From positions 2,914,001 through 2,978,000 of the forward strand of contig OZ176053.1 in assembly GCA_964247055.1 (NCBI GenBank): DNA of 64,000 bases. The letters run 5' to 3'. Of the stretch, positions 850 through 33,783 are shown piece by piece. The DNA is from Paragordius varius (Eukaryota; Animalia; Nematomorpha). Position 1 is the stretch's first letter. The number at the start of each line of letters is the position of its first letter. The notes below the pieces were generated by a model. It saw only the letters and a program-made list of their open reading frames with translations, was not told the origin of the DNA and did no database searches. Made by a program: the position numbers and the translations under genes.

Positions 850-1821
850 TTATTTTCGGTTACATTTAAGGGTGGCTTCGTTTATATCCTCTTCAGACAT
901 AATTTTAGTTTCGATTAATGCTTTAAACATTTGATACTTGGAATGTCCAATAAATTTTTGATCCAGAAAAGCTGGAAATCCTCTGTAACCATCGTCCATA
1001 GTGTATAAAGGTACCCGACAAAACCCCAAAACCTAAATAATGAGAAAAAAAGTATAAATGAGGACGCGATCATAATACAAAGTAGTTAATTAATCAGGCA
1101 TTATGTAATAAATAGCCTTAGATGCATAACGATATATTAATAAATTTATGAAGGGGATTCACAATACTAGATAATAAAGGGACATAATTTAATGAAATAA
1201 TATAAGATTTATAAAATAAGACATCTTAATTTTAAAAGACAATTAGGTAATTAGATTAATAAAAAAAATACGTAAATTTTAAATAATTTGATACTTCTTT
1301 CCCATAATCGTGGGCTAATAAACATCGTTTTTCTAAATCACAAAAATCTTCATACTTTAGTTTTTTCACATAAAAATGAAGACAAAGTTCCTGTTCTTTG
1401 ATAATATTTGAAATCTAAATAAATAAAAAATAGTGTACTAAATGATCTTGCTTATAAATGGTATATTTTTTAGAATCCCATCCAATCTCTTCACTAAGTT
1501 CGCGTGTTAAAGATTCCTCAAAAGATTCGTCTGTTGAATCAACTATCCCACCTGGAAATCCGAGAAAACCATCAAATCGAACTTGCATCTAAATATCACA
1601 TTTTATTTTTGAAATACGTATATTGCAGCTTTAGTCCAATATTTGTTAAATGTTAAAACATCGTGTGGGGCATAAATCATACAATGCGTGGCATGAGTGT
1701 AATCTTTTAATTTTATTGCATCTTTATAATCGATTTCTTCAACGTTGCGAAAAGATAAGTACCATTTATCAAAATGTTCTTCTCGTTCGACACATTTTTT
1801 GTCATCATGATATCCATTCAT
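850..1821 (-). CDS. NUDT16: Nudix hydrolase 16 (U8 snoRNA-decapping enzyme / IDP phosphatase family), about 218 aa, 4 exons
   Basis: Exons 1821-1618, 1588-1439, 1414-1295, 1032-850 join at GT-AG introns of 29, 24 and 262 nt, all phase 0. The translation contains HATHCMIYAP, AAIY|MQVRFDGFLGFPGGIVD, the Nudix box ...LTRELSEEIG, HFYVKKL, AHDYGKE|VLGFCRVPLYTMDDG and GFPAFLDQKFIG. These are collinear with recalled NUDT16 motifs (MQMRFDGRLGFPGG, RELREELG, DHGLEVLGLVRVPLY). Confidence 0.92.
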
Positions 1822-2512: not shown

Positions 2513-4679
2513 TTGAAATAATTATTATCATCACTCACGAATCTGAGATAATAATATATTATCTGTTGGAAAAAAGTAATGATACTTCTGATTTTGTTTT
2601 TAGAGCTTAATTTCTAAATTGCTAAATAATATTAGGCCGAAATATGGATATTACTTCTAAATAGGAAAGTCCATCGGCATCATCGTTGATCTTTTGATTT
2701 GGGGTTATAAATCACATAAACTAAGCACAAAATAATGGTCTAATATATATTTTGATTGAATAATGTATAAAAATATTTTATCTGGATTTGGGCTTTATGA
2801 TTCATAAAGAACGCAAATACTACTTTTGGGGCAATTACTGATATCACATCAAACGACTCAGTTTGTTTATTTGGGATGTTTTTATGCCTTAAAATTGTGA
2901 TTGAGTATTTTAGAGTCATTTTGGTTATTCCCGGCCTTACTCCCTAAATCAAAAAACTGAATCAATATATGTTTTTTATTTGATTATAGGAAAGGTATTT
3001 ATAATTTTTATATGGGATGTTTTGTAAAAAAAATATAACTCACCTTTTGCTTTACGGACAAAGTGCAAAAAAATTTATATAAGTCTTATATCATTTTTTT
3101 AACGCAATATGATGAGCATGCTCTGGATATATAGTAAATAAAGTTATAATAATAATTAAAACCGCATAATTACAAGTTTATTAGATTCAAATTTAATATC
3201 AATGTGCTATTTTTTAGCATTAATACCAGTAACATCAAGGACCCTCTAAAAATATTTAAAATCGTTATGTTAATATTTAGCGTTTAGGAATATGTCTATA
3301 ATATATATTATCAAATAAAATTTCCGTGGCCGGTTTTTTTTGTATTTTTGATTTTATTCGACTTGCAGCATGTATTTTTTTCTAACCTGTAAACTGCATT
3401 TATTTTTGACATTTATTATCTTAAAGCTTTTAGTTATCAAATAATATATGATTGATAAATTGCGCATTTTTTATCCTTGTTTTTGCCGAATTTCGGACTT
3501 TTTTATATATAAATGTTCTAAAAAATCTTAAAAGGTGGTTAGACTTTTGGAGCCCACATTTTCTGTATTTATTGCATTTGAAATCTTTTTTTATAGCTTT
3601 AAATAATCCTTGAAAATCCAGATACCCTTTTTATATATGTTTTTCATCGGGATACTTTGTGAACTGCTTATATGCAAAAACGCTTTTTTTACCTTTTACT
3701 CCAACTTAATTATTTTATTGTTTTTAAAAGCAATAATTAATATTCAAGAATCGTTCAATGCCATTTGGTCAATAAATCGTTTTTTAAAAATAATCATGGA
3801 ATATAAGACTTTTGCCAAATATTTTTAAATTTTATTGTTAATTTTACATAAAAAAATAATATTGACCGAGACAAATAGAGAAATTATAATCAACAAGTAA
3901 AATTTATAATATTTTATTTAATAAAATTGTTAAAATATTAATCGGTTAGATTGTAACAACACAAAACTTTTCTAATTGAAGTCCAAAACATATATATATG
4001 CCTTTTTACCGGCTAATGATTATAATTTTTCAAATCCATTATTAATATATATGGTCAGAAAGATATATAAATGTTTATTGGAATCAATCAAAACCAAAAA
4101 ATAAATCACATATATATTCTTTTGTTGGTAATTCTCAAATTCACATTATTTTATTAATCTTTGATTTAAGAAAATGCGGTTGATTATTTTAGAAAACTCA
4201 ACTAGACTTTTATATAAACTATTAAATATGAAAGCGTAAACTTCTATATGTATTATTAACAGATTTCGATCAAAAAAATTCATCATACCTAAAACTCAAA
4301 CATCGTTTTTTATATACGGATAAGAACCAAACAATTTGACAAAGATGGTTAAATCAGCATAATCTTGGGGAATAGCACACAATATATTATTAAACGGTCA
4401 ATGATGATATCATTTTTTCACTATATAAAATTATTTTAGAGGAAATCTTTAGCCACCTTTGTGACAAAGAGTGGTGACATTCAAATAATATATGGATATA
4501 ATAATTAACATACTTTTAAATGAAACCAAGTTAGTTTACGATAAATAGAAATCTAATCAAGAAAAGCTTTAGCAAGAAATTTATTCGTATAATAAGATAA
4601 CTACTAAGAGTAATAGCATTGAAGTGGAAAGAAATTAAATCATTATCATTATTATTTAATTCGCATTATCATTTTGCAA

Positions 4680-6371
4680 TCAATTGTATAAAGTAGGACG
4701 CTTACACAACGGACACATAGTGGGTTCTTTCGAATCAAATGGCCTAGCGCAAACTGGACAGCACGTCATTTTTGGTGGATCGTTATTTATGTAAAAATTT
4801 GGTGGTTGTTGATTAATAGGCGGTGGTTGTTGGTAACTCATATCATACCCATAGTTTGGTATTTGTTGCCCAAATTTAGCGCCTTGATTTTGGTTAACCA
4901 CAAGAGTATTTCGCTTACATTCCGGACATTGGGTTAAGGCTTGACCGGTGGGAAATGTTGGCTCTTGATTCCCCATAGAATTCCACAATCCTTCGCCTTG
5001 TTGTCCGGGCAAAAAGAAGAGTGGAACACTACAGGGTGCTTGAAATGACATAGGCATCATATTATTACCGAAACCGTTAACATTATTAATGGTATTTTGC
5101 CCTTCGGGTGGTATAGGATTGTTAAACCTCTCAATCGGTTGCATGCAAGCTTCACAATAAACCTTCTTAATTGGTTGAATCTCATACGGTTGATTGTTGG
5201 TTGGGTATTGAGGCACAGAATAATTGACTGCAGGCGGGCCTTGTTGATTAACCCCAAAATTTGGTGGTGGACAAACAACGGGCATATTAAACTGCTCTTG
5301 TTGCTGCGGTTGTTGTGTCATATTCATATTATTGTAGGGTGTTTGCTCAATCTTAAGAGTCATTCTGTGACATGCCGGACATTCGGTACACCCTGTGCCA
5401 GGAAATGATGGAGGAGGAGCATTAACCATTGATGGGCCTATGTTATTAACCATCATGGATTGGCCAAACATATTGCCGTTATTTAAATAATTACCGGCAC
5501 TTCTAAAATCTGAATTAACCGGAGGAAAACATGATTGTTGTTGGAACTGAGGTTGTGCCGAAGCGTTGAAAGCTAAGTTATTAGTTGTTGAAGGACACGG
5601 GACTCTTAAAGTATTTCGCTTGCATTCAGGACACTGAACGACTTTATCGGTGTTTCCAGAGCTGGGAAATACTTCGTTAGAGAAGGGAATAGGTTGTGGT
5701 GGTGCAAGGTATTGTGGGGCAGGCTGTGTTGCAGCATAATTCATTGGCATTTGTTGCGGTTGTTGAGGCATAAAATCAAAGGTTGGTTCATTTACAAGCA
5801 ATGTATTACGCTTACAGTCAGGGCATTGAACTAATTTTTGTTGCATTGATCCTTCTGGTCTCCCTTGATTACCCATAGGCCTTGGGAATTGATTCATTCC
5901 CCCATTAAATACAGTTTCATAAGAGATTTGACTTTGTCCACAAACTTTACAATTACTGACTTTTGGCACGGTCATTGGTGTGGGAGCGTTTTGAATCATC
6001 ACTGGTTGATTGTCTGAGAAACCTGGAAACGCAAAGTTCATTGGCTGTTGCGATGGAAATGGAATAGAGGCCGTTGAAATATCGCCATAATTTGAGGGCA
6101 TTATGGTAGGATCATTATTTTGTGCTATCGGAATATTAAAATTGGTATTTACATTCCCACCAGGTGCATGGCACACAGGACAAAGACCCCCCGTAGCGGG
6201 TTGATCAAAATTATCATCGGGTACGTCTATAACTTTATTAATCATAAGAGTATTTCTGTGACATGCTGGACATTGCGTGAGTGTGGGGACAATAATATTT
6301 TTGGTTTGCCGTGTCCCAGGAAATTTCCCAGGTCTGGCACAGAGAGATGGGCTAAACATTTGTTGTTGCAT
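4680..6371 (-). CDS. Intronless 563-aa Pro/Gln/Asn/Met-rich protein with ten CxxC (zinc-knuckle-like) motifs; family not recognised
   Basis: 1692-nt open frame from ATG to TGA, clearly GC-richer than its flanks. Internal repeats CPxC[KH]RxTL x6 and CxxC x4 are also visible at nucleotide level (e.g. 5356-5395 vs 6246-6285). Confidence 0.85.
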   Translation of the reverse strand: MQQQMFSPSLCARPGKFPGTRQTKNIIVPTLTQCPACHRNTLMINKVIDVPDDNFDQPATGGLCPVCHAPGGNVNTNFNIPIAQNNDPTIMPSNYGDISTASIPFPSQQPMNFAFPGFSDNQPVMIQNAPTPMTVPKVSNCKVCGQSQISYETVFNGGMNQFPRPMGNQGRPEGSMQQKLVQCPDCKRNTLLVNEPTFDFMPQQPQQMPMNYAATQPAPQYLAPPQPIPFSNEVFPSSGNTDKVVQCPECKRNTLRVPCPSTTNNLAFNASAQPQFQQQSCFPPVNSDFRSAGNYLNNGNMFGQSMMVNNIGPSMVNAPPPSFPGTGCTECPACHRMTLKIEQTPYNNMNMTQQPQQQEQFNMPVVCPPPNFGVNQQGPPAVNYSVPQYPTNNQPYEIQPIKKVYCEACMQPIERFNNPIPPEGQNTINNVNGFGNNMMPMSFQAPCSVPLFFLPGQQGEGLWNSMGNQEPTFPTGQALTQCPECKRNTLVVNQNQGAKFGQQIPNYGYDMSYQQPPPINQQPPNFYINNDPPKMTCCPVCARPFDSKEPTMCPLCKRPTLYN

Positions 6372-7029
6372 TTTAGGGTCGATACTTACTTACTAACCAA
6401 AATTGTAATAGCGAAATATATACATTAACTTTTAAAGTAAATGAAGTTAAATATATATGATAATCATTAATAAATGAGTATTAAAAAAAGTTAACAATCA
6501 ATTAAAATTTGCAATATTAGATTAAACAACTTTTAAATATTGTCTCTCATGCCACATCAAAACTAATTTGCTTTTTTTACAGAAAAACTATATAAAACTT
6601 TATACACAACAAATAATTTGAGCAAAACATTAAAAAAATTAACTTAAATCTTGATATTATTTAACTATTATTATAACAGCCATCGCTGTAAAAATTTAAA
6701 GAGATGTATTTAGAACTCAAAAATATATGAATGCTACCATAATAAAAATAGTGAATAACCGTCTGATCACATATAAATGCTTAGATAAAACCGTATTCGC
6801 TATTGAAATTTTTTAAATATCTTACTTTTTAGTATATTTATTAAATAAAGCTTTGTTAGGGAGCGGTCTTCATATTCAAGAAAACTAACCAGAGAGTATT
6901 GTAAGTATCATTATTGACATTTCTATTGCCAGCGACATTTATGTCTAACATTCTTAAAAACTTTCATATAATCATATAATAAAATTACATTAGGTCATAT
7001 TCGTAAACTATTCCGATATGAACCCTAAT

Positions 7030-7470
7030 TATGGCGTTTTAGCATTTAAGTTTGGTTTTGCCATGTTTCCTTTACCGTATCTATCCAAAGCGTTTGAGGA
7101 CTTCTTCCCCTTTCATCTTTGACAATACTCATCAATCTTTTGACCGATATAATTACCATCTTCTAGGTGTCCAAACCATATAAGATTTAATATCCTCTTT
7201 CGTATTAATTTTATCTCAGGACTTTCTATAGAATTCCATACTTTATCCTAATTTGTAACAGCACATGATAAGCTATCTCATTAGAGTAACTTCAATGTAC
7301 TTGTCTTCTGATTCCATTAGTACCGCGTCTGTGAATGACATATCATTGCTGTACAACAGGACTGTTTAATCTTACCTTTTACTTTTAAATCAATATTTTG
7401 ATCGCATAAACATTTCAGGATCTTTTATAATTTGCCCAAATATTTGGAATTCCTCAATTTATATCATGCA
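7030..7470 (-). mobile_element. Degenerate RTE-clade LINE, 3' part of the RT ORF
   Basis: Minus-strand fragments in shifting frames resemble EFKYLGQI, KGKI, E.K.EVT.MR, WFGHLE and RGR..P..LWIDTVKE, the typical C-terminal region of RTE ORFs. Many stops and frameshifts. Confidence 0.7.
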
Positions 7471-9219
7471 TTAAAGAACCATCTACTGCTAAAATTGGTC
7501 CTAAATATTTTCTTCTTCATCGTGAACATTTTTTGTCCCACATTCCCATTGAAATCACCATAGGCCTTCGAACGATTTCGCAAATACCAGTTTCATTAAC
7601 CCCATTTCGGTTTCGAAATTTCACGACACCCGGTTCCATTTTTTATTTCCTAGGAATCAGCCCGGTTCCGGTTCTAATCTCAAATAGTGGCTCCCATATA
7701 AGATTATTTGCAAAAATAAAATATAGTTTAAATTACTATTTAAATTTGATTGTCTAATAAGAATTTTTTTGGTTTGCCATCAAAGTGAAAGGAATCATAA
7801 TTTTAGAATATATTGTTTAATGATTATTTTTAAACTTCATAATGATTCATTTTTTTGCATACGATTGAAATGTAATTACTGTGTGAATATTTTTCTTCTC
7901 AATTCCTATTAACATTTAAAGAGTATATCACAGACATAATTATTGAGGTAGATTTTTTTGAATTATAGATTAATTAAGCTTATTAACTAACAAATAAACT
8001 TCTGATAAAAAAGTATAAACTGTATTTTGGAATCCCATAGCTTATAAAAAATGAAAATACGATAATCCAGGTCATGCTTTTTTATATTTTCTAATTTTAC
8101 AAATTTTATATGATTACTTTATACTATTTTAAAAACCATAAACTATAGTGTCCATATTTACTCATAAAGGAAAAATGAACCACACTATATATCAGTGATA
8201 TTCAGGGCCAGGAACCGTATGAGACCCGGAAAATGATTTTCTGGTCAGAGATTCAAAAAATATTTTAATATTATCTTAGAATGCTAGATAAGCGGTACAT
8301 ATTTCGACAGCCCAATATGTATGAATTAGTTGCAATGTGTTAACAAACAAGTAATGAATATGTTCAATGTACAATAATTGTTGATATTTTGGGTTTATGT
8401 TTTTATAATAAAAATATTGTATGAAAATCATTTAATATAAAATCAACAGCTGAAATAGAACTGTTTCCGTTACAAAATTTTAGAAACACCGGTTTCATTT
8501 TTTAATTCTTAAGGAATCAAGGCGGTTCCGGTTTCAGCCATCCTCCTACTACCGCTGATTTACTTTTTTTCGAGCTGATTCTAAGTCCTGATAGCTTATA
8601 GTGACCAGATAAGCTGTTTTTCGCAGTACTGTACTGGGTTTTCTGAAAAAAACTGCGCCTGTACTGCGCCCACTTTTGTACTGCTTTTTGAAATAAAAAA
8701 AAATAATTTTTAAAATACATTATTTACCTTTTATTTATTCAAAAAAAAATATTTTAGAATTTAATATAGTACCCTCTGTAAAAATAACCTCATAATTGGT
8801 AAAAAAATGCATTTTGAGGTACAAAACTAATCTTCTCGAAATATACATAAAACATAGGATTACGACCTTTCGCGCAGTGGCGAAACTATAAATCTCGGAG
8901 TCTACACCGTAAGATTCAGGCTAATGGTTCTTTCACTTAGGGCTTCGTTTAAAATTAAAAATCTAATTTATGATATTTTTATAAATGTTTGACAGTTAGA
9001 ATTTTTTGTTCAATTATTAAACGGAAAATTATATAGAAAAATTTAAAATTCATTATATATGGCAGATGATTTCGAAATAACCTTTTTTCGTAAAAAATAG
9101 AGTTTTTACGATATCCATACTCACTAGGTTGTAGGTATAATATTTCTTAATTTTTTTCCTAAACATTAAATTTTATTTTTTTATACAGTTTAGAGTCTCT
9201 TTTTTCCTTTTTAATTAAA

Positions 9220-9373
9220 GGGCAAGGACTTAAATTGTATCCGGACTTGTGAAGGCTTTAATACTCGCCTGCCCAGGGCTGACAGTGATGATGGAAAAAT
9301 TGCGTAATATCGAGGTTCAAACTCTGTCATGCATTGCAAGAGTCCGGCGCCCTACCTACTATACCATCACGCC
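9220..9373 (-). pseudogene. tRNA-derived SINE head or tRNA pseudogene (Lys-like loop)
   Basis: Minus strand GGCGTGATGGTATAGTAGGTAGGGCGCCGGACTCTT...GAGTTTGAACCTCGATATTACGC has A-box- and B-box-like motifs and a pairable acceptor stem (GCGTGAT/ATTACGC). The anticodon and T stems do not pair. Confidence 0.35.
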
Positions 9374-9445
9374 TCTGAACATTAATTTTTATTAGTTATC
9401 TCATTTTTTTGCATAAATAAAACTGAGATATTTTGTTGAAGCGTA

Positions 9446-9736
9446 CTTCAAACTGTTTTGAAGCATGATGGAAACTGTATAACGCTTTGAGATATAATAA
9501 AATTCTTTTTCCAAATAATTCGATGATGTTGAACATTCATAGTTTAATGTTTGCTTGCAAATTTTGGTGCATTTTTGTGAAAAAAAAACAATTTTTATCT
9601 AACATAATTTTGAAAACGAACAAATATTTCAATCAAAATCCGTGTGAGAAATTAGCATTATCGAATTATATATATAAAATGTTATAACATCTCAACCGTT
9701 TATATCGTTTCCATCATGCTCAAAATAGTATGAAAG
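9446..9736. mobile_element. Old MITE-like inverted-repeat element
   Basis: Imperfect inverted arms of about 50 bp: CTGTTTTGAAGCATGATGGAAAC...GAGAT at 9453-9492 vs ATCTCAACCG...GTTTCCATCATGCTCAAAATAG at 9689-9728. Confidence 0.5.
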
Positions 9737-10160
9737 GGAATTTTACGTTTATTTTGGGACAATGATGTATGGCACCGGCTGACGCAACATCCTCTCCAGG
9801 CTAGAATCGAACAATGACCGTAAATCCTTAATGACCCCGATCTTTAACACTTACCGAAAAAACTTCAATAATTGTGGCCAACTGAGCTCTTGAAGCTGCA
9901 CTGATGAACGCGATTACGATTATACCCCGAAAACCTCGATCACTTTTAAGCTCTTGGCAAGAGGAAACGCACCAGAGTTACTAATCCTATCCCGTTGAAA
10001 ACCAACGCAAAACTTCCTGCTATATGACGATGACATCGGAACCGCTGATATTTGAGGGCTGATTACCAATATTTTACTTTTATTTGAACCGGATACTTTG
10101 CTCCAGATTGATACTATTGCGAAGTCGGTATTATTTTAAGGTTAATTCCCACTGCTGGAT

Positions 10161-10500
10161 AAGGTATGAATTTTATTTTACAACGCTCTGTTAATGTCAG
10201 TTAATATTGATGTAATTAAGGTATAAATTTTTATTTTAAAACGCTTTGTTAATGTCAGTATTGATGTAATTAAGGTATAAATTTTATTTCACAACGCTCT
10301 GTTAATGTCAGTTAGTGTTTATGTAATTAAGGTATAAATTTTTATTTCACAACGCTTTGTAAATGTCAGTTAGTATTCTTGTAATTAATGTATAAATTTT
10401 TATTTTACAACGCTCTGTTAATGTCAGTTAGTATTCATGTAACTAAGGTATAAATTTTTATTTAATAACGCTCTGTTAAAGTCAGTTAGTATTGACGTAT
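10161..10500. repeat. Minisatellite, 6 units of 54-58 bp
   Basis: Units start at 10161, 10218, 10272, 10329, 10387 and 10445. Consensus AAGGTATAAATTTTTATTTTACAACGCTCTGTTAATGTCAGTTAGTATTGATGTAATT. Confidence 0.95.
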
Positions 10501-11927
10501 AAAATCTGTTAAGGGTAAACACCTATACAGTTAGTTAAGAATATAGACTGCTTCCCACAGATATCCCACGAACAAAATGTACCACTGAATGTATAAAGCA
10601 TGCAAGACGCGACTCTGAGTAGACTATTAGCCAATTATTGTGGGACGACGTCCTGGGAAGCAATGTTGGAGCCGCTGATATTTGAGCAGGGCTGGTTACC
10701 AATCTCCGACATTTTGTTGGTCGGAGTTGAGTCTTACCTCAGAGCAAGGTCAACGACCACTTATCCCGGGTTAGCGTCCCAGTTGAAGGTACAACTGAAA
10801 CATGGTCGCACGAAGGGGTAACGTTGACGCTTGTAATGTCTAAGATCTCCAAAATTGGTCTACCTTAAAGGCCACACTCATTTAGAAGCAAAAGAAGACC
10901 CCCTTCCACACCAAAGATAAGAGCTTAATTAACTCTACATTTGATCCAATATAGACCTTTGACATTACTTTATGGAGTAATCAAACCCTGTTTGTACGGT
11001 TATTTAAACTCAAATATTGCTTTTATTTACCTAACAAGGCGATATTAACATTTCTTTTAAAAATATATGTATATATATATATATATATATAGCTTATTAA
11101 CTATACTAACTCCCATTAACACATCTAACATGAAGGCTTTTATTTATGTATGTAGATACTAACGTCAACCCAACCTCTGATGTGTTTCCCCGCTCTGAAG
11201 CTCAATGCATTACGGGTGGGTAGGGATTGCCTTGACGGCAGGTGGCCGACGATCTTCCGACGCTACACCCTTTACTTGTTTACTTGTTTACGTTTATTTT
11301 AAGAGAACGGTTAATTTTAAAAGAGCCAAAAAAATTGGGACTTTTAGAGCCACACCTAAAAACTTAAAACATTGTTTTGCTTTTTATATGGAATGTTATA
11401 TTTTAGTGATATTTGAAATCATACATTTAGCATTCACCAAAAAATATATTTAAAAAATTGCGCCCCTTTTGCAATTTTATACGGAGCACTTATTGTAAAT
11501 AACTTTTTTTAATAACTCGTAAAGGTTCAAACCAAAAGCACCATGATAATCCTGATATTTTCCTATCAGAATATAGATATATTTCATCAGGATATTTTTA
11601 ACTGTGGAATATTCCACACCGATGGTTTAAAAACAAAGCAAAGTATGTTTTAATTTTGTACTGCGTTCAAGTTAAAAATATCTGGTCACATTATGATAGC
11701 TAAACAATCATTAAATAAAAAACTCGAGTGAGAATTCAAAGTGATAAAAAAACATTTAGGGCCGTGATTTGTACCACTGATATGTAATAGTCAATAGGTA
11801 ATTTGATTTCACAGAGTTTTTAAATGGTAAATAATAATAAATTTATCACATAAACTCTGCAATCAAGCTATGGATAAGCGCACAGACTGTGTAGTTGATC
11901 ATCGTTTCGTTCATTCGTTTGTAAAGC

Positions 11928-14900
11928 ATGGGTAAAAAGCGAAAAAATTTATCTCAAAAACTTGTTAATCAGGAGAAAAGAATTGAGAAGGCGATTGATA
12001 AAGACCGTAAAAAGGCAAAAGAAGTATTAATTTTTACTAAAATAGGAAAAAATATCCGATATTTTAACTGACCTATGGCAAAACAAAAATGATAAAATTA
12101 CCAAAACATATCCATCTCCTCGAAGCGGGGCTACTCTTGTTTCTCATCCCACCAAAGATATACTTTACCTGTTTGGTGGTGAATATGATAATGGAAAAGA
12201 AGTTAATTATGCTTTTATTATAGATTGTTTTTTATGACGAACTATTTACCTACGATATAATAAAAGATGAATGGACATGTATGCGACATAAAATATCTCC
12301 AGGTGCTAGATCATCGCATCAAGTATTAATTAATTTAATATATCATAGATGGTAGCTTTTTCACATCAAGGAGGACAATTATGGTTATTTGGTGGAGAAT
12401 ACATAAGTAAGAGCCATTTACAAATACATCATTATAATGATCTTTGGTTGTATGATATTACTCGAAATGTATGGGAAAATATAAAGTATTCTTTCTATGC
12501 TAAATATATGCATGCAGATTAAATTCTGGTCCTTCACCTCGTAGCGGTCATAGAATGGTTGCACTCGATAAATTTATTGTGCTATTTGGTGGTTTTTTCA
12601 ATGACAACAAGTGTATTTTTAATCATTTTAATTTATTTTTTATTGCAACCTAATAAATATTTTTTTGGCATTTTAGGGCTTTTAATATATATAAAAATAT
12701 ATGGCATCTCTATTATTATATCCATTCCATTATAACAATATGACAATAAAATAGCTTTTAGAAATAAATCAAATTTCGCTTATCAATATACGACGAATAG
12801 TAAATTTAGGGACGAAATTTATACATTAATCACGCCGCGTTATAGGATTCATTTAAATAATTGTGGCCTAATATTTTTTTATCGGTGTTTAAATTGTCCT
12901 TAGATCTACTATAAATGGAATTTATATATGTTTATAAGCATTGTTATATTTTAGACGTTGCGAATATTTCAACGACTTATACGTATTTGATATCGAGAAT
13001 CGGATTTGGAACAAAATTGAAGGATTGAATCAAAAAGGAATTCGCCCACCACCCAGATCTGCATTCCATATGCTTGCATACACGGATAGCAATAATTCGA
13101 AGCCTAATGAAAAGTCCGAAAACGGTAATAAATAATAGAAAAACAATTTAAAATTATAAAAAATTGAAGATAATTTTTTGTTGTTAGAAACATGCAAATT
13201 CTTTTTTATATAAAATATTATTGTTATATTAATTTTAATGTTTTCTATATTAGAGAATGACTTTTCATTATCTCTTTTTTATATTGTTAAAAATTTGAAA
13301 CAAATTGTATTATCGTGATTGACATAAGCATATATAAAAAAGAAATTTTGTGGTGTCCCCTTTCCTTACTTGTGTTAAAAATATATTTAATTGATATTTT
13401 TTAATTAATTTTATAATCATTTTAACTCAATTTTTTATATACATATTAATTATCAAATTTCACATCTAAGGTATTCTTATATTTTGGGGATATGCCATAA
13501 CAAACGAAACTAGCGGCAAATCCAACATTAAAGATCTCAGCAATACAAAATCAAAGGCGCAAAAAGTCGCATCAAATTCCAATGGTGTTGGCAAAAATTA
13601 CATGGATATGTACAAGCTCATACCTGATACCACATGTAAGGATATATTTATTTTTTGTTTAATTATGCAATAAATTATGTTGTTGTTTTTTTGTGAAAAA
13701 ATAATAAATTTAGACAATTATAAGAATGTAATGCATTTTTTCCCTATTATTTTTTACTTTGGGGGATGATATTCTGGAACCGGAATCGAAACATTTGCAT
13801 CTTTCGGACTTTTTGTTTTGCCATATTTCTAATTATTAAAACCTATTTTAAAGCGTCTTTTTTAAAAAAATTATGCAAATATTATTCCAACCAACTTTTA
13901 TTGCCATCTCTCCGCTGTGTTGACCGGGATATGAAAATTTGCTTGGGCAAAGGCCAGTTTTTCTGAAATTTTTAAAATTATTACGCAAAGGCATGTGTTA
14001 CGTAAAAAATCACCTCAATAAACCATGAAACATGTATATCCCGAATAATACGATTACTTCATTGCAAGAAAACTCCTAATCTTTACCCAATTCATACAAT
14101 TGTTGATGGCTATTTTTACTATAACTGAACTGCATTGTTTTTTAACAAACAATTAGCTTTCGATGTTATTTATCGCAGCCTAAAAATTATCTATTGACAA
14201 ATGTCTCCTTTTAAATTTGCATATAACAATCCTCCGAAATCGAATCTACTTGGTTATTATAAATATTGATGTTATGGAAAAAAATGAAATATTTTTTATA
14301 GTAAATTCACGTAATATGATCTATATATAATTTTTTACAATAGTTCAAAATTGGCGCTGGCATCCCCTCAAACAAAAAATGGGTGCAACCATGACAATCG
14401 AACAATCTTCAACTCTATACAGGTGTGGAGCTAGTTCATTGTGTTACGGTTCTGGTCGAATATTACTTTTTGGTGGGGTTTATGATCAACATGAGACTGA
14501 CGATAGGATAAGTAAGTAAGGTTTTTATATTTTTATTTGGTTTTACTTAATATATTTTAAAATAGATACAAAAAATCAATTAAAATACGAAATTTTTATC
14601 TTGAAGTTAGAATAAAATTTTAGGGAATTAAAGTTAATTTTAACAGCCATTTTTTGTAGGGTCATATTATTATCATTATTATTATTATAATGTTTCATAT
14701 ATTAATATTTTGTTTATTTTTAAAACGTTTCTGCAAACTTTCTGGCTAGTTTATTTATTACTAGCACAAATCTCATGCAGCTACACAGCCCGAGGAAGTC
14801 CTTCTGACTTATGGGGGGAGGGGGGGAGCTATTTTAAAAAAGGGATCAATAAAATGATCCATATATGTGGATTATTTCGAATCATTATTTAATAGCTATG

Positions 14901-17900
14901 ATCTCATAGGATTTTCTAAAAGTTGCATTCAATATCTTTTTTACTGGTGTAAAAGCCCCAAATTGACAGCTAACGGAAAAAACCGCTATACTATAATTTT
15001 TACCTTTTTATGGGTAGTATTTAAAGCCTTAATTGAACTTGTGTGACTTCTTAAGTTTTTTGAAAATTATCTCCAAAGCCACGCCATTTTATGTCGTCTC
15101 AGTTTTAACCGGTAGACCCCTACCAATAGGCCTATATGGAAAAAGCGCTAAGTTAAATTTTTTGTCTTTATAGGGAATTCGAAAAACTACCTTAACACTA
15201 AATAATTGTTATATGATGGCGTATTTTTAGGGCATAAGGCCCCAAATAAACGGCTAATAAAAAAAGGCCTGACCTTAATTTTTACCTAGTTACGGGTAAT
15301 ATTTCGAACCTTAAATGAGCTCATATCGCATAAGTTTTCTTTAAAATAGTTCCAAAACAACGTAATTTCTATATAGTGGCACAAAACAAAAAAAAGCGCT
15401 TGATTAAAATTTTTGGCTTTTTACGGATGCTCTCATTAGTTTTTTGAAAAAATTGCTTCAAAATTAAAAAATCATTCTATGGTGGCGTATTTTTCAGGGC
15501 ATAAAGGGCCTAATTAACGGCTAGTTTTAAAACCGCACGGTATAAATGTTTGCCTTGTTACGGGTAAAATTTTCAGCAGCTATTGAACTCATATAGCCTG
15601 ATTGGTTTTCTGAAACTTAGCCCCAAAGGCACGCCATTTCGATATGACGGGTCAGTTTTTAGCGGGTACTCCTTACCCAGCAGCTATCATCAAAGAAACG
15701 GTTGACTAAAATTTTTGCCTTTTATCAGGAATACCTGGAATCGTTATTGATTTTTACCGTCTCATACTTTGGGCGGAAAATAGAATTAAAAAATTATTTT
15801 TGTGGACTTAATTTTTTGAGAAAATGGCATTTTACGGGGGGAGCGGGTAAAAAGAGGGCCTAAATTAAAAAAGCAAGCCGACTATGTTCGGCGCAATCGA
15901 AAAAAAGTAAAAAATTATATTGGAAATAGAATGGTCCAACACGTTTTCCGGAAAATTGTCTCAAAGACACGATTTTTGTGGACTTGTGTTTTCAAAAAAA
16001 CCGTTTTTTACACGTGGTGGGCCCGAACTGGGGGCTTAATTCAAAAAAAGGACGAAGCTATTGTCGGGGCATTCATTAATGATTATATTTTTCGATGTTT
16101 GGATTTAAATGGGTCTACCGGTTTCCCGGAAACAGATCACAAAGCCACCACTTTCCATTTTATTAAATATATAAATTATTGGTTAATTAAATTTACCACA
16201 TATATTATGGACTCTTAGGGTTTAAATTATATAATTGTTAATCAATGCTATGCTAAATTTTAATTTTTAGAGCATATTAAAACAATAATTACAACCATAT
16301 TAATTTTAAAAAAATGATATACATATCTTGATAGATAGTCAATTTTTCAACGATATGTTTCAATTCGATATTGGGACAGGGGTATGGGTCCCATTTCCAA
16401 TCCTTAAACAGCATCGGAATGATCCACAAACTTGTGCAGATGAACAATCTACAATCATTGACAATGAAATGTCGGATTCAATAAAACGCTCTAAAATTTG
16501 TAATGGCTCATCAACAAATAGTGCAATATGTTCCCCACTGTTGAGTAATGAATGGTAATTTTTTTACTCTTTTATTTGTAAATAAAACAATTATAATTTG
16601 GTTCTGATTCTTTACCGTGGAAAAAAGAAAATGTATTGATTATATACTTTATTTTTAGTTATCATTTCGGTTCTACTATCCGATTTATCACACTGTGTTT
16701 AAGGTTAAACGCTGATAACCATTTTTTTATGATTTGATTAGCTTTTCCCTGCGTCATTTAGTAACCCAATTATGTCGCAGCGCGTTTTTAAAGGAATCAA
16801 ACTATAATTTGATACTAATTGGTCTATACATTTTCGTAATATCATGATCTCATATTTATGCGTTTTTCCATTCCATAGAACTCTCTGTGACCCGGCCTTT
16901 ATACGGAGATTATATGATCTAGCTTAAAACGTTAGTTTTACAGAAGCTGGGGCTAAATACAGCAAATAAAAATCACAATGTTTGACGCATTTATATATGA
17001 AAAAATACTCATGAATATAAATTACATTTTCTCGATTATTTGAAGGCAATACATTCTGATTTATGTGGGGCCTGGGGCCTAATATAAGAGACCATTGACA
17101 AATGAATATATATGGTTTCTCTCATTTTATTATCTCTATATATTTGTACATCTTAGTTGTCAACCAGAAATAAAAGCATCAAAAAACAAAACTAGACAGC
17201 AAAATTGTGAAGGAGACGCCGAAAATAATTTATACAAAATACCACCCGAGAATTGTATTAGACCATGTCCACGCATGAAATCTGCATGCACAGCCCATTA
17301 TAAAAATGGCTCTAATCTAATGTCTGTCTTTCTTTTTGGCGGTATGTTAGAAACGTCTAAAAACGCTCCCAGAAATGATCATTGTCCATCAACTGAAGAG
17401 TCGACATCCCCCTCCTCAGAAAGCGATGATGAAAATGAAGTTTATATAATTTTTTTGTGATGTTTAGACAAAATATGATTCATAAATTGTTATGGTTTAT
17501 GTAGTAAATTGGTATAGGTTTTGAGGTTTTTATGGCTTATTCTTCATTTGTCAAAAAAATATTGTTAAAAACGGGATCTCACAAAAAATTAAATTAAAAT
17601 TATACCATTGTTAAGCACAAAATGACATAAATATTTAAGTACTACTATAATTCGTACAAAATTGCCATAATTGGTTTGAAAATATATTAAACCTTTTTTT
17701 AAATTTCTTTATATGTATGTTAATTACATATATACAAAAAATAGTTTTGTGTAGGGTTTGGGTTTTTTGACAGAAAAAACAACCGGTCTCTCCTTATAAT
17801 TATAGTTTTTAGTGGTAATATGTAGTCCTTATTATAAGAAATTATGAAATATTCCAATTAACTATACCAAATAATCGAGTTTAATTATTTCAATGCTTTA

Positions 17901-19207: not shown

Positions 19208-21847
19208 ATGCTTTCTGCGTTTGATAAATTTGCCTCGATTACTTGCCGTGGTTCTGTACGTAATGTATCCTATAAAATGAAATCTAAACATTGGAATCCA
19301 AAATATAAATATGCTCGTCAGCAAAAATACAAATATATAGAATTGATTGATACAGATGTTCTTTTTGACCGTCAAAAGTTAACTACAGAAGAAATTCGCT
19401 CACAAATGAAACGAAAAGGTAATATATCGTATATGTTAAGGGGTTTTACCCTATAGACCATATATGGAAAAACCGATGCATATTAGTTCTACTGCGGGAG
19501 TGTATGAACCTTATGTTCCAATTGAGGGGGATGGTAAAAGTTTTGACCTTAAAAACAAAATTAAAGAACAATATGAGGAGATTGTTTTAAAGGGTATATG
19601 AATTTATTAAATTATAGGGAGATCTATGCTTGATGTCCAAAAACTTAAAAGAATTGAACCCAATTTTAGCCTTAAGACATTTCCCTCACTGGCTCAAGAA
19701 ATTTATATAAAGGCCCACGAGGCACTAGTTAAATACGATGAAAAAGAACTGCATGATTTGGTGACAGAAAAAGCTTATATTGATATGACTCATGGTCTAG
19801 AATATTGCACCGTAATTTTTCGTTAACATTATGTTAAATATTATAATATAAATTAATAGTTACCGTTAAAAGCTAAAAATAATGTAAGGCATCACAATGG
19901 TTTTAATGTAAAGAATTTGCAATACATTTATGCATATTTATTTCTTGCTCTAGCTCATTCCTCGTTTTTATTAGATCTTAGCCTAAGTTCAATTTAAAAA
20001 TAAAACTAGAAACAAATTGAAGGTTATTTAGGATCTCAGGTCAGGATTTGTCCTCGATATGAATAAATATTTAACAATGAAAGCTCATTGATTATGATTT
20101 CATAAATTTTTGTCTTTTTTGGGGGAAGGGGGTGGACAAGACCGGACGTAAAAATATGGATTCTTTTATTATTTTTTAAAATTAGTTTATTGGTTGATAT
20201 TTTATTCATTGCTGTATTCAGTTATTAAAACATTTTTTAATTATTAAAAATCATGGGCATAATATTATCACGGTTAGGCGTGTGGTAATTAAAAATATAC
20301 GAATTGTGTTTCTTGATATTACTTAAATCATAAATCGGTACCAAAAAGTACCCTTTACGGTGGATGCCATTCAAACAAGCATACTTTGTTCAATTTTAGC
20401 TTAAACATTTACTTGGACTTTATCGCTGTTTTTAAAGAAAGCTAAACCTATTTTTTATATTTTTTAAACACTATAAATAATTTATTTTTTTATAATCCAT
20501 TAAACAGCTGTAAATTTTTAAATCTATTTAAACTAACTTATTTTTTTCTCACCTTTTTCTTTTTCTACTACACATTTTCTTCCCGTTGGGGAGGTTGTGG
20601 AAAGGAATGCCATCCTCACATAAAAAATTTGGGAAAAATGCAAAAATTACTAGTAAATCCCATATTGTAATACGGTTTTAACAAAAGCTAGTTTTAGACA
20701 GAAACTTTTTTAGCACAATTTACACATCATAAGTAATTTTCATGAAACATTTTTGGTTATATATTTTGTTCATTTAAAATTTTTACCTCTTAACTATTTT
20801 ATATTAATCAAAGTTGATATTGTGTAACAGATTATATTCATTAGATGAAATGGGACTTCATTGAATCTTTGGAGCCGCCAAGAATCGTTCATGCCAGAGT
20901 TTTTCCTTTTTCAGATCCGAAAGCCCCTCCCGATTTTGCGCAAATAACTGTACGGTTTTTCACGAAACAACGGCTAGCCATATATGATCGGTTTGGGCGA
21001 TTGTTTTATGGTAAACTTGATCTATACACATTTTTTAAGTTTTGAATAAAGTTTTATAATTAAAACTTTTATATTTACAAATTAAATAGACGGCAAACAC
21101 ACTAATTTTGCATTACAACAGTTTGGATGAATCGCATTAAGAACAATCAGACATTTTTGATGATTTTTTAAGTCAAATCATCATACATTACTGTATTAAC
21201 TTAATTCAGTATAAAATTATACGGACAAACACGTTAATTAACTTAATTTTTGGATATTGTGTAGCTGAAGTGTTATTGTATTATTAAGCTGAATTATAAT
21301 ATCAATAACAATGCAATAAATTAATTTTATTTGAATGTTTAAAATTGTTAATTATTTATAGAAATGTGTGTGGGTAATCAATTATATAATTTAAAATTGT
21401 AATTTAATAATTTATATAGGAAAAACGTTAAAAGAGTGTGGTTGTGCAAAAAATATGTCTTCGTATATTTTTACGTTTTCTCCGTATAATTTTTAATTTT
21501 TACTGTACTTTTTCATAATGATTGTTATATGGTATCTTAAAGATTTATTAAATTTAAAGTGAAGTTTTCAATAATTTGCTCTAGGAAATTCACCATTTTC
21601 CACGGAAACTACACCCACTGACGTTTTGGAATATGTCGTGTTTGAAAATCATATAGTTGACACTTATGGTAAGTGGAGATTGCATGCAAAAATTATTCCT
21701 GATTGGATGAAAGATGATCATCCCTCCAATAAACAAAATAAATCTCAAGTCATTTCAACCTTTATTCAACAATCAGGGCCATCAGCATCACCGCACACAA
21801 ATGAACAAAATAATGATACCATTGTAAACATGTACAAACAAACTTAA
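19208..21847 (+). CDS. MRPL45: Mitochondrial large-subunit ribosomal protein mL45 (Tim44-like domain), about 328 aa, 5 exons
   Basis: Exons 19208-19418, 19441-19593, 19618-19811, 20845-21010, 21585-21847 total 987 nt in frame; introns are 22, 24, 1033 and 574 nt. Motifs KHWNPK, YEPYVPIEGDG, AQEIYIKAHEAL, LHDLVTEKAY, WDFIESLEPPRIVHAR, FAQITVRF, QRLAIYDRFGRL, DVLEYVVFE and WRLHAKIIPDW. Confidence 0.93.
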
Positions 21848-30506: not shown

Positions 30507-31706
30507 CTAATCAATCAAACGTTTCTTGTATTCTTCCCATAAATTGGTATATTCAATGCCTGCCTTCTTCTCTTGCTATTATCCAATAGATGGTGCAACA
30601 ATGTTATTTATTCTGCTCCCTTGTAAGATTTGATGTTGATTTCTGTCATCTTCAAGATCAAACCATGTCCCAGTTGAGGCCGCAGTGTTTGAATCAAACA
30701 TTTCATTGATATCCATAACATTACTGTTGTAACTGGTAGAATCTGACGTGGCTAAAGATTCAGATGACAGTACAGACGAGATTGACGATTCGTCGGGATT
30801 TGGGATGGAATTTAGTTGTATTACAACATTATTTTTATTCTCAATATGCTGGTCCGGCGAAATTTGTGCCAAACCTGTTTGATTGTTATGACCTTGTCGA
30901 ATTTTTCCATAATCTATTGGCCTTGATTGATGTTTGACTTTGTCACAATATTGTGTGGGCAGCAATTCTGGGGAGGAGCTCTTTACCTCTAACGTATGTT
31001 GTGGTAAATTTTGGGCATTTCGATTTGGAGGCGCTTGTATATAACTTCTAAGATATTCGTCTTCTTCAGAATAACCATTCCAAACCCAAGCGCGTTGAGA
31101 GCTCGTGTTTTTCAAGTCATGATTATTGTAGTTATAGCGATTGACATAACATTTGTGAAAATTATATTCTTCGCCATCTGGCCTTGATATATGTGTCGTG
31201 GTAGGAAAATTTAAAATCACGTCACGCTTTGTATTTGTATGTTTGCTAGAATCGATACATTGTAATTGGATTGGTTTTTGCCTACAAACATTAGTGGTAT
31301 CATGAGATGTTCCTTTTTGAGATTGATTGAAATATTGTGAATCCAAGTTAGCGCTGTTGAAATTCAGGTCGCGTTGTAAATTGTGGAAACGTTTTTCCCC
31401 TTTAAGCAAATCTTGCGTTTCCTCCATTTTATCAATGTTTTTGTTATCATAACTGTGCTTTACTCTTGTGGAGGGTGTGGCAGTATTGATATTTTTGTTA
31501 GTTTTTCCACTTTTTATACCATTATTACTGTTGCTGGTGGAAGATAAGAATTTAGACATGAAAGATGATGACGATGATGAAATGTTTTTATTGTCTCGAT
31601 TAGTAGTGGATTGATTAATAATCGTATTGTTTTGAAATTGATTGGATTTATTGGAACAATTTGGTGGTGATGTCGATATCGCAGAAAATTTACAGTTAAA
31701 TCGCAT
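30507..31706 (-). CDS. Uncharacterised Ser/Asn-rich low-complexity protein; probable last 22 codons after a 24-nt intron; upstream exons possible
   Basis: 1128-nt open frame (375 aa) with coding-like composition. Candidate GT-AG intron 30599-30576 restores the in-frame tail QEKKAGIEYTNLWEEYKKRLID*. A possible acceptor CAG lies at 31715-31713. Confidence 0.65.
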
Positions 31707-33783
31707 TATGACCTGGTTTGGATATTTTATAATATAAATAAATGTGGAAATAAGGTAAGAAGCTAATACTAAAAATAATGGTAGTAAATTGTAATAAAGT
31801 TTTGAATATACAGAGATGAGACGCGAAAGCAGTTATAACCACACAATACTGCCTCTGCCTTGTGTTAGGTTTTATATTTTTACCACAAATTATAGAAAAA
31901 TAAAAAAATTAGTATACTAAAATATTCTAAATTTTTTTATACGTATACACTTATAAAAAATGCATAATTTCGTACTAGTTATGCCTAGCATTAACGCAAA
32001 AATGTAAAAATAGTTGTAGATTTTTAGATAATAATATAAGTAATGTTGTAGTGGAGAAAAATATACGATATTATAGAGAATAAATTGTATAGACACAAAA
32101 AGCAAAACAGACTAGACGGTTCAACAAAACATGGTAAAAAAATATTTTATACATTTTTTTAAATATGTATATAACCTTTTCGTATTCAAATAACATTTTT
32201 TTGTAAATAAAATGTGATTTGTACTGTAAAACATGTAAATCTTTCATCGTTTATATTATTTTTTAATTTTATAACATAAATCGCGGTTTTAATTTATTAC
32301 AGTAAACACCTAACAAATTGTTTTATAGAGTTTTTAAGTTAATTGAAAATTAAAAGTGCGCGAACAGGTATTATTCCCTATGAACAAATAAGCCCCAGAT
32401 TTTGCTTTATTTATGATTTATTATTTGTCCAATTAAAACTTATTGACACGCCGTTTTTATGTAGTTACAAGGTCTATTATTGGCCCTTTTTGTTATTTAT
32501 CGTGCTAAAAGAGGTTTTAATTAATAGTCTATTAGTATGTGATATATTCTATTATTTAGTTAAATTTAAAAGTATGCACATTTATGATGGCCTATTTACA
32601 TTATAGTTGGCCGAATAGCAACACAATATTGTATGGGTAGAAACGACACAATGTTGAAATTAAACAATTTTTCCCTTCTTACACCATTAATTTGTTTATT
32701 TAATTTATGGAAAAATTTGTTGTCCAAAAAAGCTACTGTATCACCAATTGACCAACATTAATGATGGGAATAGCCCAACATAAATGTGAATACTGTATTA
32801 CATACAGGATATTTTTTGCTAACTGGAACCATCTTAAAATTCAATTAAAATAAAATTATACATACCAGCAGACTGTAAATTAAATACCCTTTTAGCCAAT
32901 AAAAAAACTGAAATAACCAATAATAGCTCTCGTCACATAATTAAAATCTATTGTATAATTTGATTATGTTAATTCAATGAATGATAATGGTTTTAAAGCT
33001 CATTAGTTTTCTTTTGAATTTTTATGTAAGAAATTTTTTACCTGCTACAATTCAGTTATTCCCAACCAATACATAATAGTCAATAATACGGCTTTATAAT
33101 GCATAACATTAAATGTTAGTTTTAGACTTTACATCCACAATATGTAATTATACTTTTACCTGAGACAAATGAATATTGTTTAAAATTAAAGGTAAGCATT
33201 AGGGTTAAATAAGTTCATATATTGTTTACAATTGGTCAATTACAATATACTGTCTATATCTAATATTATATGGAAACAAATTAATTATATGATTATAAAG
33301 TGTATCTCGTAACCTCGAAAATCAGGATGATATGAAAATTGAGAGGAGAAAAAATTATATCAAAATCTTTATAATTTAACAAAAATATTTTTTAGAAAAA
33401 TATAAAATCGGTGAAAATAGCGAAGCGAAAAGTAGTACGTGATGCATCACTCTGGATTAAGACTAAGTAAATTGTGGTTTTAATAGTAATAAATTTTGTC
33501 TGTGGCTTTTACGTCTAGTACACAAGTATATGACCCGCACATACACCTTTTTAAAAAACAAAAAATTGTTAAAAAGATTGAAACATAATAATAATAATAA
33601 TAATAGTCTCTATTTTACATTAAGATCATCCTTAAAGAGTTTAAAACTAATGTGTTAAAAAATAAAACAGTAAAATGAAAACCAAATTATGTTTTATTTC
33701 AAAAAAATACACAAAAGTAATTTGTTTGATCTTTTTGAACATTCAGCCAGCGCTAGTATTAAAAAATATATGTGTGTATGTTA

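Follow-up and report, generated by a model that had tools for sequence, protein, structure and literature searches.

In the genome of the nematomorph Paragordius varius, an unbroken open reading frame (ORF) at positions 4680-6371 on the minus strand of a 64,000-nucleotide stretch (NCBI GenBank assembly GCA_964247055.1, contig OZ176053.1, positions 2,914,001 to 2,978,000 of the forward strand; hereafter the window) constitutes a true protein-coding gene of restricted taxonomic distribution, and it is under purifying selection. Its product is composed of four tandem repeats of about 150 amino acids (aa), over which ten CxxC knuckles are distributed, and to judge from its sequence it is an orphan zinc-knuckle array protein of a new variety. 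The knuckles had been noticed in an earlier reading of this DNA (the original prediction); the four-fold periodicity of about 150 aa is new here and was absent from that reading.

The single-exon coding sequence (4680..6371, minus strand) extends without interruption from its ATG through 563 codons to a TGA stop, is the sole ORF of such size nearby, and is preceded just 5' of the ATG by in-frame TAG and TAA stops. Evidence that it encodes a functional protein comes from its allelic variation, which was read from the contigs of public DNA runs of two studies and of which only the best-supported differences are listed. The 26 differences so listed within the ORF divide into 17 synonymous and 9 non-synonymous ones, against an expected ratio of 3.8 non-synonymous sites to each synonymous one; the per-site ratio of non-synonymous to synonymous differences (pN/pS) is therefore about 0.14 (binomial P about 1e-6 to 2e-4, by the assumed synonymous fraction). 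No listed non-synonymous change comes nearer than 9 residues to a CxxC, none of the listed differences creates a stop within the ORF, and the only length difference seen inside it is a net 3 nucleotides (nt) in one contig. Frameshifting indels of 1 and 8 nt do occur directly upstream of the ATG, outside the ORF. At positions 5127-5199 one run (X1) has only the alternative letters, and another (X2) has both forms at half depth each. The earlier view that this is a real gene is thus well borne out.

Five runs contain the locus, and all are DNA, since their contigs span the intergenic flanks at the depth of the ORF and cover them just as evenly. The equality of depth over ORF and flanks also indicates that the gene is single copy. 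Neither direct nor inverted repeats flank it, and the window contains no paralogue; one candidate, a tblastn match at 32841-32909, was rejected as a chance similarity with stops around it. Run X5, which is labelled with a second organism name, carries several alleles of the runs with the first label (at 4905, 5662 and 6342), and the two organism labels of runs X1-X5 may represent one gene pool or a mislabelling. The density of listed variants seems higher in the ORF than in its flanks, an unreliable comparison because only the best-supported variants were printed.

The composition of the DNA sets the ORF apart from its surroundings: its G+C content (GC) is 0.35-0.42, as compared with 0.21-0.29 in most of the flanking DNA, and the intergenic stretches of the window have 23% GC. 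The GC of the 64-kb window is compatible with the 26.9% reported for a nematomorph genome (10.1101/2023.06.26.546503). The codon usage of the ORF is host-like, because its GC at third codon positions (0.32, vs 0.26 in neighbouring exons) and its preferred codons (CAA, AAT and CCA/CCT) match those of the exons nearby. As had been claimed, the gene is intronless among intron-bearing neighbours, the latter falling into several exon-sized pieces while this ORF is unbroken.

The 563-aa protein contains 27 cysteines, most of them in CxxC motifs that begin at residues 34, 64, 141, 183, 247, 328/331, 406, 482, 538 and 553. If the overlapping CTECPAC at 328/331 is included the CxxC count is 11, and when the sequence was shuffled 20,000 times that number was never reached. 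The ten knuckles of the original prediction are therefore confirmed, as is its finding that six of them belong to an extended motif, [TV][QEM]CPxC[KH]R[NMP]TL, in which C, P, C, R, T and L are invariant. On the minus strand the six copies lie at 6246..6281 (LTQCPACHRNTL), 5799..5834 (LVQCPDCKRNTL), 5607..5642 (VVQCPECKRNTL), 5355..5390 (CTECPACHRMTL), 4902..4937 (LTQCPECKRNTL) and 4689..4724 (PTMCPLCKRPTL), and nowhere outside the ORF was the motif found when the 64-kb window was scanned in all six frames. An FP dipeptide precedes five of the six units by 8-21 aa, in agreement with the earlier observation that most are so preceded. The claim that only the last two knuckles have the spacing of a zinc ribbon must be amended, since the 26 residues between C37 and C64 are also an ordinary zinc-ribbon distance; there are thus two ribbon-spaced pairs, one at each end of the chain (C37-C64, and C541-C553 with 11 residues). 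Five additional cysteines (C11, C259, C281, C367 and C447) are unpaired.

The repeat structure is most easily seen in the knuckles at residues 34, 183, 331 and 482, which are spaced by 149, 148 and 151 aa; at the DNA level a repeat family around the motif recurs every 453, 444 and 447 nt. Repeat 1 (aa 1-149; 5925..6371, minus strand, as are all four) has a first knuckle at C34/C37 (CPACHRNTL), an extra one at C64/C67 (CPVCHAP) and a second at C141/C144 (PKVSNCKVC). Repeat 2 (aa 150-297; 5481..5924) has its first at C183/C186 (CPDCKRNTL) and its second, which is also of the CPECKRNTL type, at C247/C250. In repeat 3 (aa 298-448; 5028..5480) the first knuckle, C331/C334 (CTECPACHRMTL), and the second, C406/C409 (KKVYCEAC), are followed by a decayed third. 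Repeat 4 (aa 449-563; 4683..5027) begins with C482/C485 (CPECKRNTL) and ends with a compact C-terminal pair, in which C538/C541 (CPVCARPF) is separated by 11 residues from C553/C556 (CPLCKRPTLYN, the end of the protein). The first knuckle of each repeat is strongly conserved, in the form FPGT...[LV][TV]QCPxC[KH]RNTLx[VI]N; the second follows the pattern [PDI]K-x3-CxxC, at C141, C247, C406 and C538.

Several observations indicate that this array is old and partly decayed, as opposed to the product of a recent duplication. The alignments between repeats have shuffle z-scores of 3.8-11, and when the 12-residue core is masked, an alignment of repeats 3 and 4 (z 6.7) and one of repeats 1 and 4 (z 4.9) persist over PN[YF]G...QQP.NF...NNDP...PK-x3-CxxC. 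Comparison of the six core motif copies gave a pS of 0.68, which is near saturation, vs a pN of 0.29, and such a combination of near-saturated synonymous sites with a lower pN points to repeats that are old and have been kept at the protein level. Decay is apparent in repeat 3, where the segment PPEGQNTI aligns with the CPLCKRPTL of repeat 4 and the cysteines are gone, and in repeats 1 and 2, which are without the 15 residues between the second and third knuckles. No tandem DNA repeats were found inside the ORF by Tandem Repeats Finder.

Between the knuckles the chain is strongly biased, with 14.7% P, 11.2% N, 10.7% Q, 5.2% M and 4.8% C in the protein as a whole. The original prediction had described it as prion-like and of low complexity. 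The first description finds no support: a prion-like domain would call for some 60 aa or more dominated by Q/N (with S/G/Y) and poor in proline and charge, and here the most Q/N-rich 60-aa window has 35% Q/N and contains 12 prolines, and the longest homopolymer is QQQ. The second holds for the compositional bias but not for true low complexity, the 40-aa entropy being 3.15-3.95 bits and the DNA being free of tandem repeats; the longest proline-free run is 28 aa. The protein has one tryptophan and four FG dipeptides, and the short linear motifs PPxY, PTAP, YPxL, NPF, DPF and SH3 class I/II are all absent from it. Neither a hydrophobic N-terminus nor a transmembrane-like segment is present (the maximum 19-aa Kyte-Doolittle mean is 0.96), so that the ORF as read indeed lacks a signal peptide. 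AlphaFold2, run without an alignment, produced models without secondary structure, whose predicted local distance difference test score (pLDDT) was 33 over the full-length chain and 43 when repeat 4 was modelled by itself.

No relative emerged from any of the searches. With the whole protein, only sub-threshold fragments over the knuckles were obtained from Pfam, NCBIfam and the PDB sequences, the best Pfam match reaching no more than 15.7 bits. A Pfam scan of the individual repeats gave matches of many zinc-ribbon models to one knuckle half, all of them below cutoff; the best was Zn_ribbon_9 with 24.0 bits vs a cutoff of 29.1, and PADR1, TFIIB, Zn_ribbon_8 and DZR_2 were weaker. Profiles made from the six-unit and four-repeat alignments had only generic CPxC matches in the PDB (E 0.3-9), and the PDB sequence and profile searches together gave E values of about 0.07-9. 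A word-index search with the whole protein and with the four-repeat profile retrieved no relative, an exhaustive phmmer search of 1.84 billion representative proteins gave 0 matches, no record of the exact protein sequence was found, and pattern scans of viral and metagenome contigs yielded no confirmed relative. The ESM Atlas returned 0.77 when given the whole protein; residues 470-563 scored 0.81 and leaned toward double zinc ribbons, at most a lead, since both values are below a meaningful level. Nor did the protein match any reverse transcriptase, integrase or gag CCHC domain in Pfam; no family reached its cutoff.

The meaning of the blank phmmer search was calibrated at the same library size with versions of the protein whose linkers were randomised and resized 0.5-1.5 times and whose cores were kept or mutated. 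With intact cores the E values were 1e-26 to 1e-30, and the bias filter was not the cause of the blank; with a quarter of the non-cysteine core residues changed they were 1e-14 to 0.1, and the relative was found in three of four trials; with half of them changed nothing was found. The searched libraries are therefore without any comparable array of conserved cores, and a very diverged relative could escape. The libraries may also lack genomes of the animal's own lineage, so that "orphan" is to be understood as orphan outside unsampled close kin. In that sense the orphan status that had been proposed is upheld. To speak of a new system, as the original prediction did, overstates the case for a single orphan protein whose role is putative.

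In the classical zinc ribbon, paired CxxC knuckles chelate one zinc ion through their four cysteines. The knuckles of the present protein share with the zinc beta-ribbons (Zn_ribbon_9 PF02591, Zn_Ribbon_TF PF08271, PADR1 PF08063) a CPxC that follows a hydrophobic residue, basic residues and an extended x-T-L-x-V stretch after the knuckle, and two ribbon-spaced pairs. However, none of the models tested (Zn_ribbon_9, Zn_ribbon_8, Zn_Ribbon_TF, PADR1 and DZR) reached its gathering score, the matches span 10-20 residues whereas most knuckles here are 38-100 residues from the next, and the unit is arrayed, with a KRNTL signature that no family shares. Only two pairs have beta-ribbon spacing (about 10-30 residues), and the AlphaFold2 models were too poor to reveal hairpins. 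A precedent in organization is offered by LITAF, in whose zinc ribbon the cysteine pairs flank an inserted segment and bind one zinc, next to a flexible proline-rich region (PMC5142333). Such LITAF/SIMPLE-like proteins resemble ours in their proline-rich flexible chain and in having cysteine pairs kept apart by an insert; but in LITAF a hydrophobic membrane anchor of 22 residues forms the insert and each protein has a single domain, whereas here the inserts are polar and P/Q/N-rich and there are ten knuckles, with no PF10601 match at E up to 10 and neither PPxY nor P(S/T)AP.

The arrays of RanBP2 fingers in Nup153 and Nup358 consist of small four-cysteine zinc modules on an unfolded, biased chain that mediates multivalent binding. 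The likeness lies in the several small cysteine modules along such a chain; the W-x-C-x2-C-x3-N-x6-C-x2-C pattern of the RanBP2/NZF fingers and their 10-residue pair spacing are absent, and zf-RanBP was unmatched at E up to 10. Lone CxxC half-sites are known that complete a zinc site in trans, as in Rad50, or with a non-adjacent repeat, as in DnaJ. Rad50_zn_hook did match residues 537-549, at 15.7 bits vs a cutoff of 24.3, but the AlphaFold2 models contain neither the coiled coil nor helices, and the knuckles are without the GxG of the DnaJ cysteine-rich domain (CxxCxGxG, four times). No known cysteine-pattern family fits this protein, in line with the original prediction, which had set aside the minicollagen/NOWA pattern; its knuckles resemble generic halves of zinc ribbons, to judge from the sub-threshold Pfam matches.

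The reading that we favour, and to which we would give a little less than an even chance, is that this genuine, restricted gene encodes a mostly unfolded P/Q/N-rich chain of four old repeats, in which neighbouring knuckles pair into Zn(Cys)4 sites and which acts as a multivalent adaptor or scaffold. We infer the zinc binding, the pairing scheme, the disorder and the multivalent role from the sequence, and our suggestion of a ligand is a guess. The looping or cross-linking, the metal or redox switch and the scaffold or structural role proposed in the original prediction are likewise putative. The simplest pairing, in order along the chain, would engage all ten knuckles as 34+64, 141+183, 247+331, 406+482 and 538+553, the intervening loops being 26, 38, 80, 72 and 11 residues long. 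It would set a K-x3-CxxC knuckle before a CPxCKRNTL one, as in the compact C-terminal pair, and the two compact pairs at the ends would resemble ordinary small ribbons. Some five bead-like small ribbons would result, the biased stretches forming loops between the paired knuckles, and the whole would be a multivalent adaptor or scaffold that depends on zinc. That [KH]-R-N-T-L has been strictly conserved through saturated synonymous change argues that these basic and polar residues, which come after every knuckle, form a repeated contact surface; it might bind nucleic acid or, equally a guess, a partner protein. Pairing may also occur in trans between chains. A more ambitious version, in which split zinc ribbons in a repeat array, their conserved CPxCKRNTL knuckles kept tens of residues apart by disordered P/Q/N loops, constitute an undescribed class of protein whose chain is reversibly compacted or multimerised by zinc, as a lineage-restricted metal-gated scaffold, strikes us as improbable.

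Several points weigh against the favoured scheme. A pairing within repeats (34+141, 183+247, 331+406 and 482+538) appears equally compatible with the repeat structure. In repeats 1 and 2 two ancestral knuckles appear to have collapsed into one, and this, together with the loss of the cysteines in repeat 3, implies that not every knuckle is indispensable. The AlphaFold2 result is compatible with disorder, a low pLDDT from a single sequence being short of proof. Five small runs guessed to be RNA contain no sequence words of the locus, an absence that is no proof of silence. Finally, AG dinucleotides are present between the upstream in-frame stops and the ATG, so that an upstream coding exon is possible, and one encoding for example a signal peptide may be joined to the ORF through such an acceptor.

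This last possibility bears on the view, akin to an alternative of the original prediction, that the product is a structural material, of the egg envelope, the sperm or the cuticle, whose knuckles cross-link chains in trans by zinc or disulfides. The many isolated CxxC half-sites, the five unpaired cysteines and a proline-rich, repetitive chain would suit such a role, and an unseen exon might supply the signal peptide. The ORF as read, however, has neither signal peptide nor transmembrane segment, no coding-like piece was found on the minus strand within 6400-8500, and the conservation of K/H-R-N-T-L goes beyond the needs of cross-linking; we consider this explanation decidedly doubtful. A strongly diverged member of a multi-zinc-ribbon family, with loops inflated beyond recognition by biased insertions, is unlikely, if slightly less so. 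The ribbon-spaced pairs that remain at both ends of the chain, and the knuckles' just sub-threshold matches to many zinc-ribbon models, are what it would predict; but no family reached its cutoff with the whole protein or with single repeats, the PDB comparisons and the exhaustive HMMER search were as poor as described, and a relative with intact 12-residue cores would have stood out in the calibration despite its randomised linkers.

That the ORF is non-functional, whether it arose by chance, is a retrocopy in decay or is left over from a transposon or virus, is very improbable indeed. Its lack of introns and of detectable homologues, the runs guessed to be RNA that are without it, and its proximity to the high-copy repeats at 7349-7545 and 8531-9900 might be adduced in favour of such an origin. 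Yet 563 uninterrupted codons stand amid intergenic DNA of 23% GC, and neither stop nor frameshift alleles are found among the differences listed; selection, the single copy, the absence of flanking terminal repeats and the host-like codons, to which a blank scan of viral contigs can be added, argue against chance origin, against descent from a transposon or virus and against recent transfer. In these high-copy repeats the contig depth exceeds that of the single-copy flanks about 10 times at 7349-7545 and about 100-1000 times at 8531-9900; internal deletion joints and loose ends are numerous, as is usual where members of a repeat family are dispersed.

If the knuckles of the nematomorph protein do pair over long disordered loops, it would offer a natural model of how zinc can control whether an unfolded chain compacts or assembles, and CPxCKRNTL would become a named motif to seek in the genomes of other neglected animals. 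At present the locus is a well-supported, constrained orphan gene that helps to annotate the genome and opens no long-standing question.

The surroundings of the gene contain a few further features. A candidate poly(A) signal, AATAAA, lies at 4580..4585 on the minus strand, 97 nt past the stop, though its weight is slight in so AT-rich a flank. Between 3000 and 12000 there are no Rfam matches, and a scan for bacterial promoters and terminators was set aside as irrelevant to a eukaryote. Among the neighbouring genes, that at 853-1588 (minus strand) has an exon of a Nudt16-like U8 snoRNA-decapping enzyme at 1418-1588 (Pfam E 3e-17), and the pieces of a multi-exon Kelch-repeat gene at 12046-17457 (plus strand) are likewise confirmed by Pfam. 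A multi-piece gene at 19440-21844 (plus strand) seems by eye to be MRPL45/Tim44-like, the two pieces tested having no Pfam match. At 10500-11300 there is a GC-rich island (0.43-0.51) in DNA of 25-30% GC, with stretches of 45-74 codons free of stops on both strands. Finally, a second unbroken ORF at 30579-31706 (minus strand) encodes an N/S/T-rich protein of 375 aa, which no Pfam model matches and whose sequence is unrelated to that of the zinc-knuckle protein; this may be a further intronless gene confined to the lineage.

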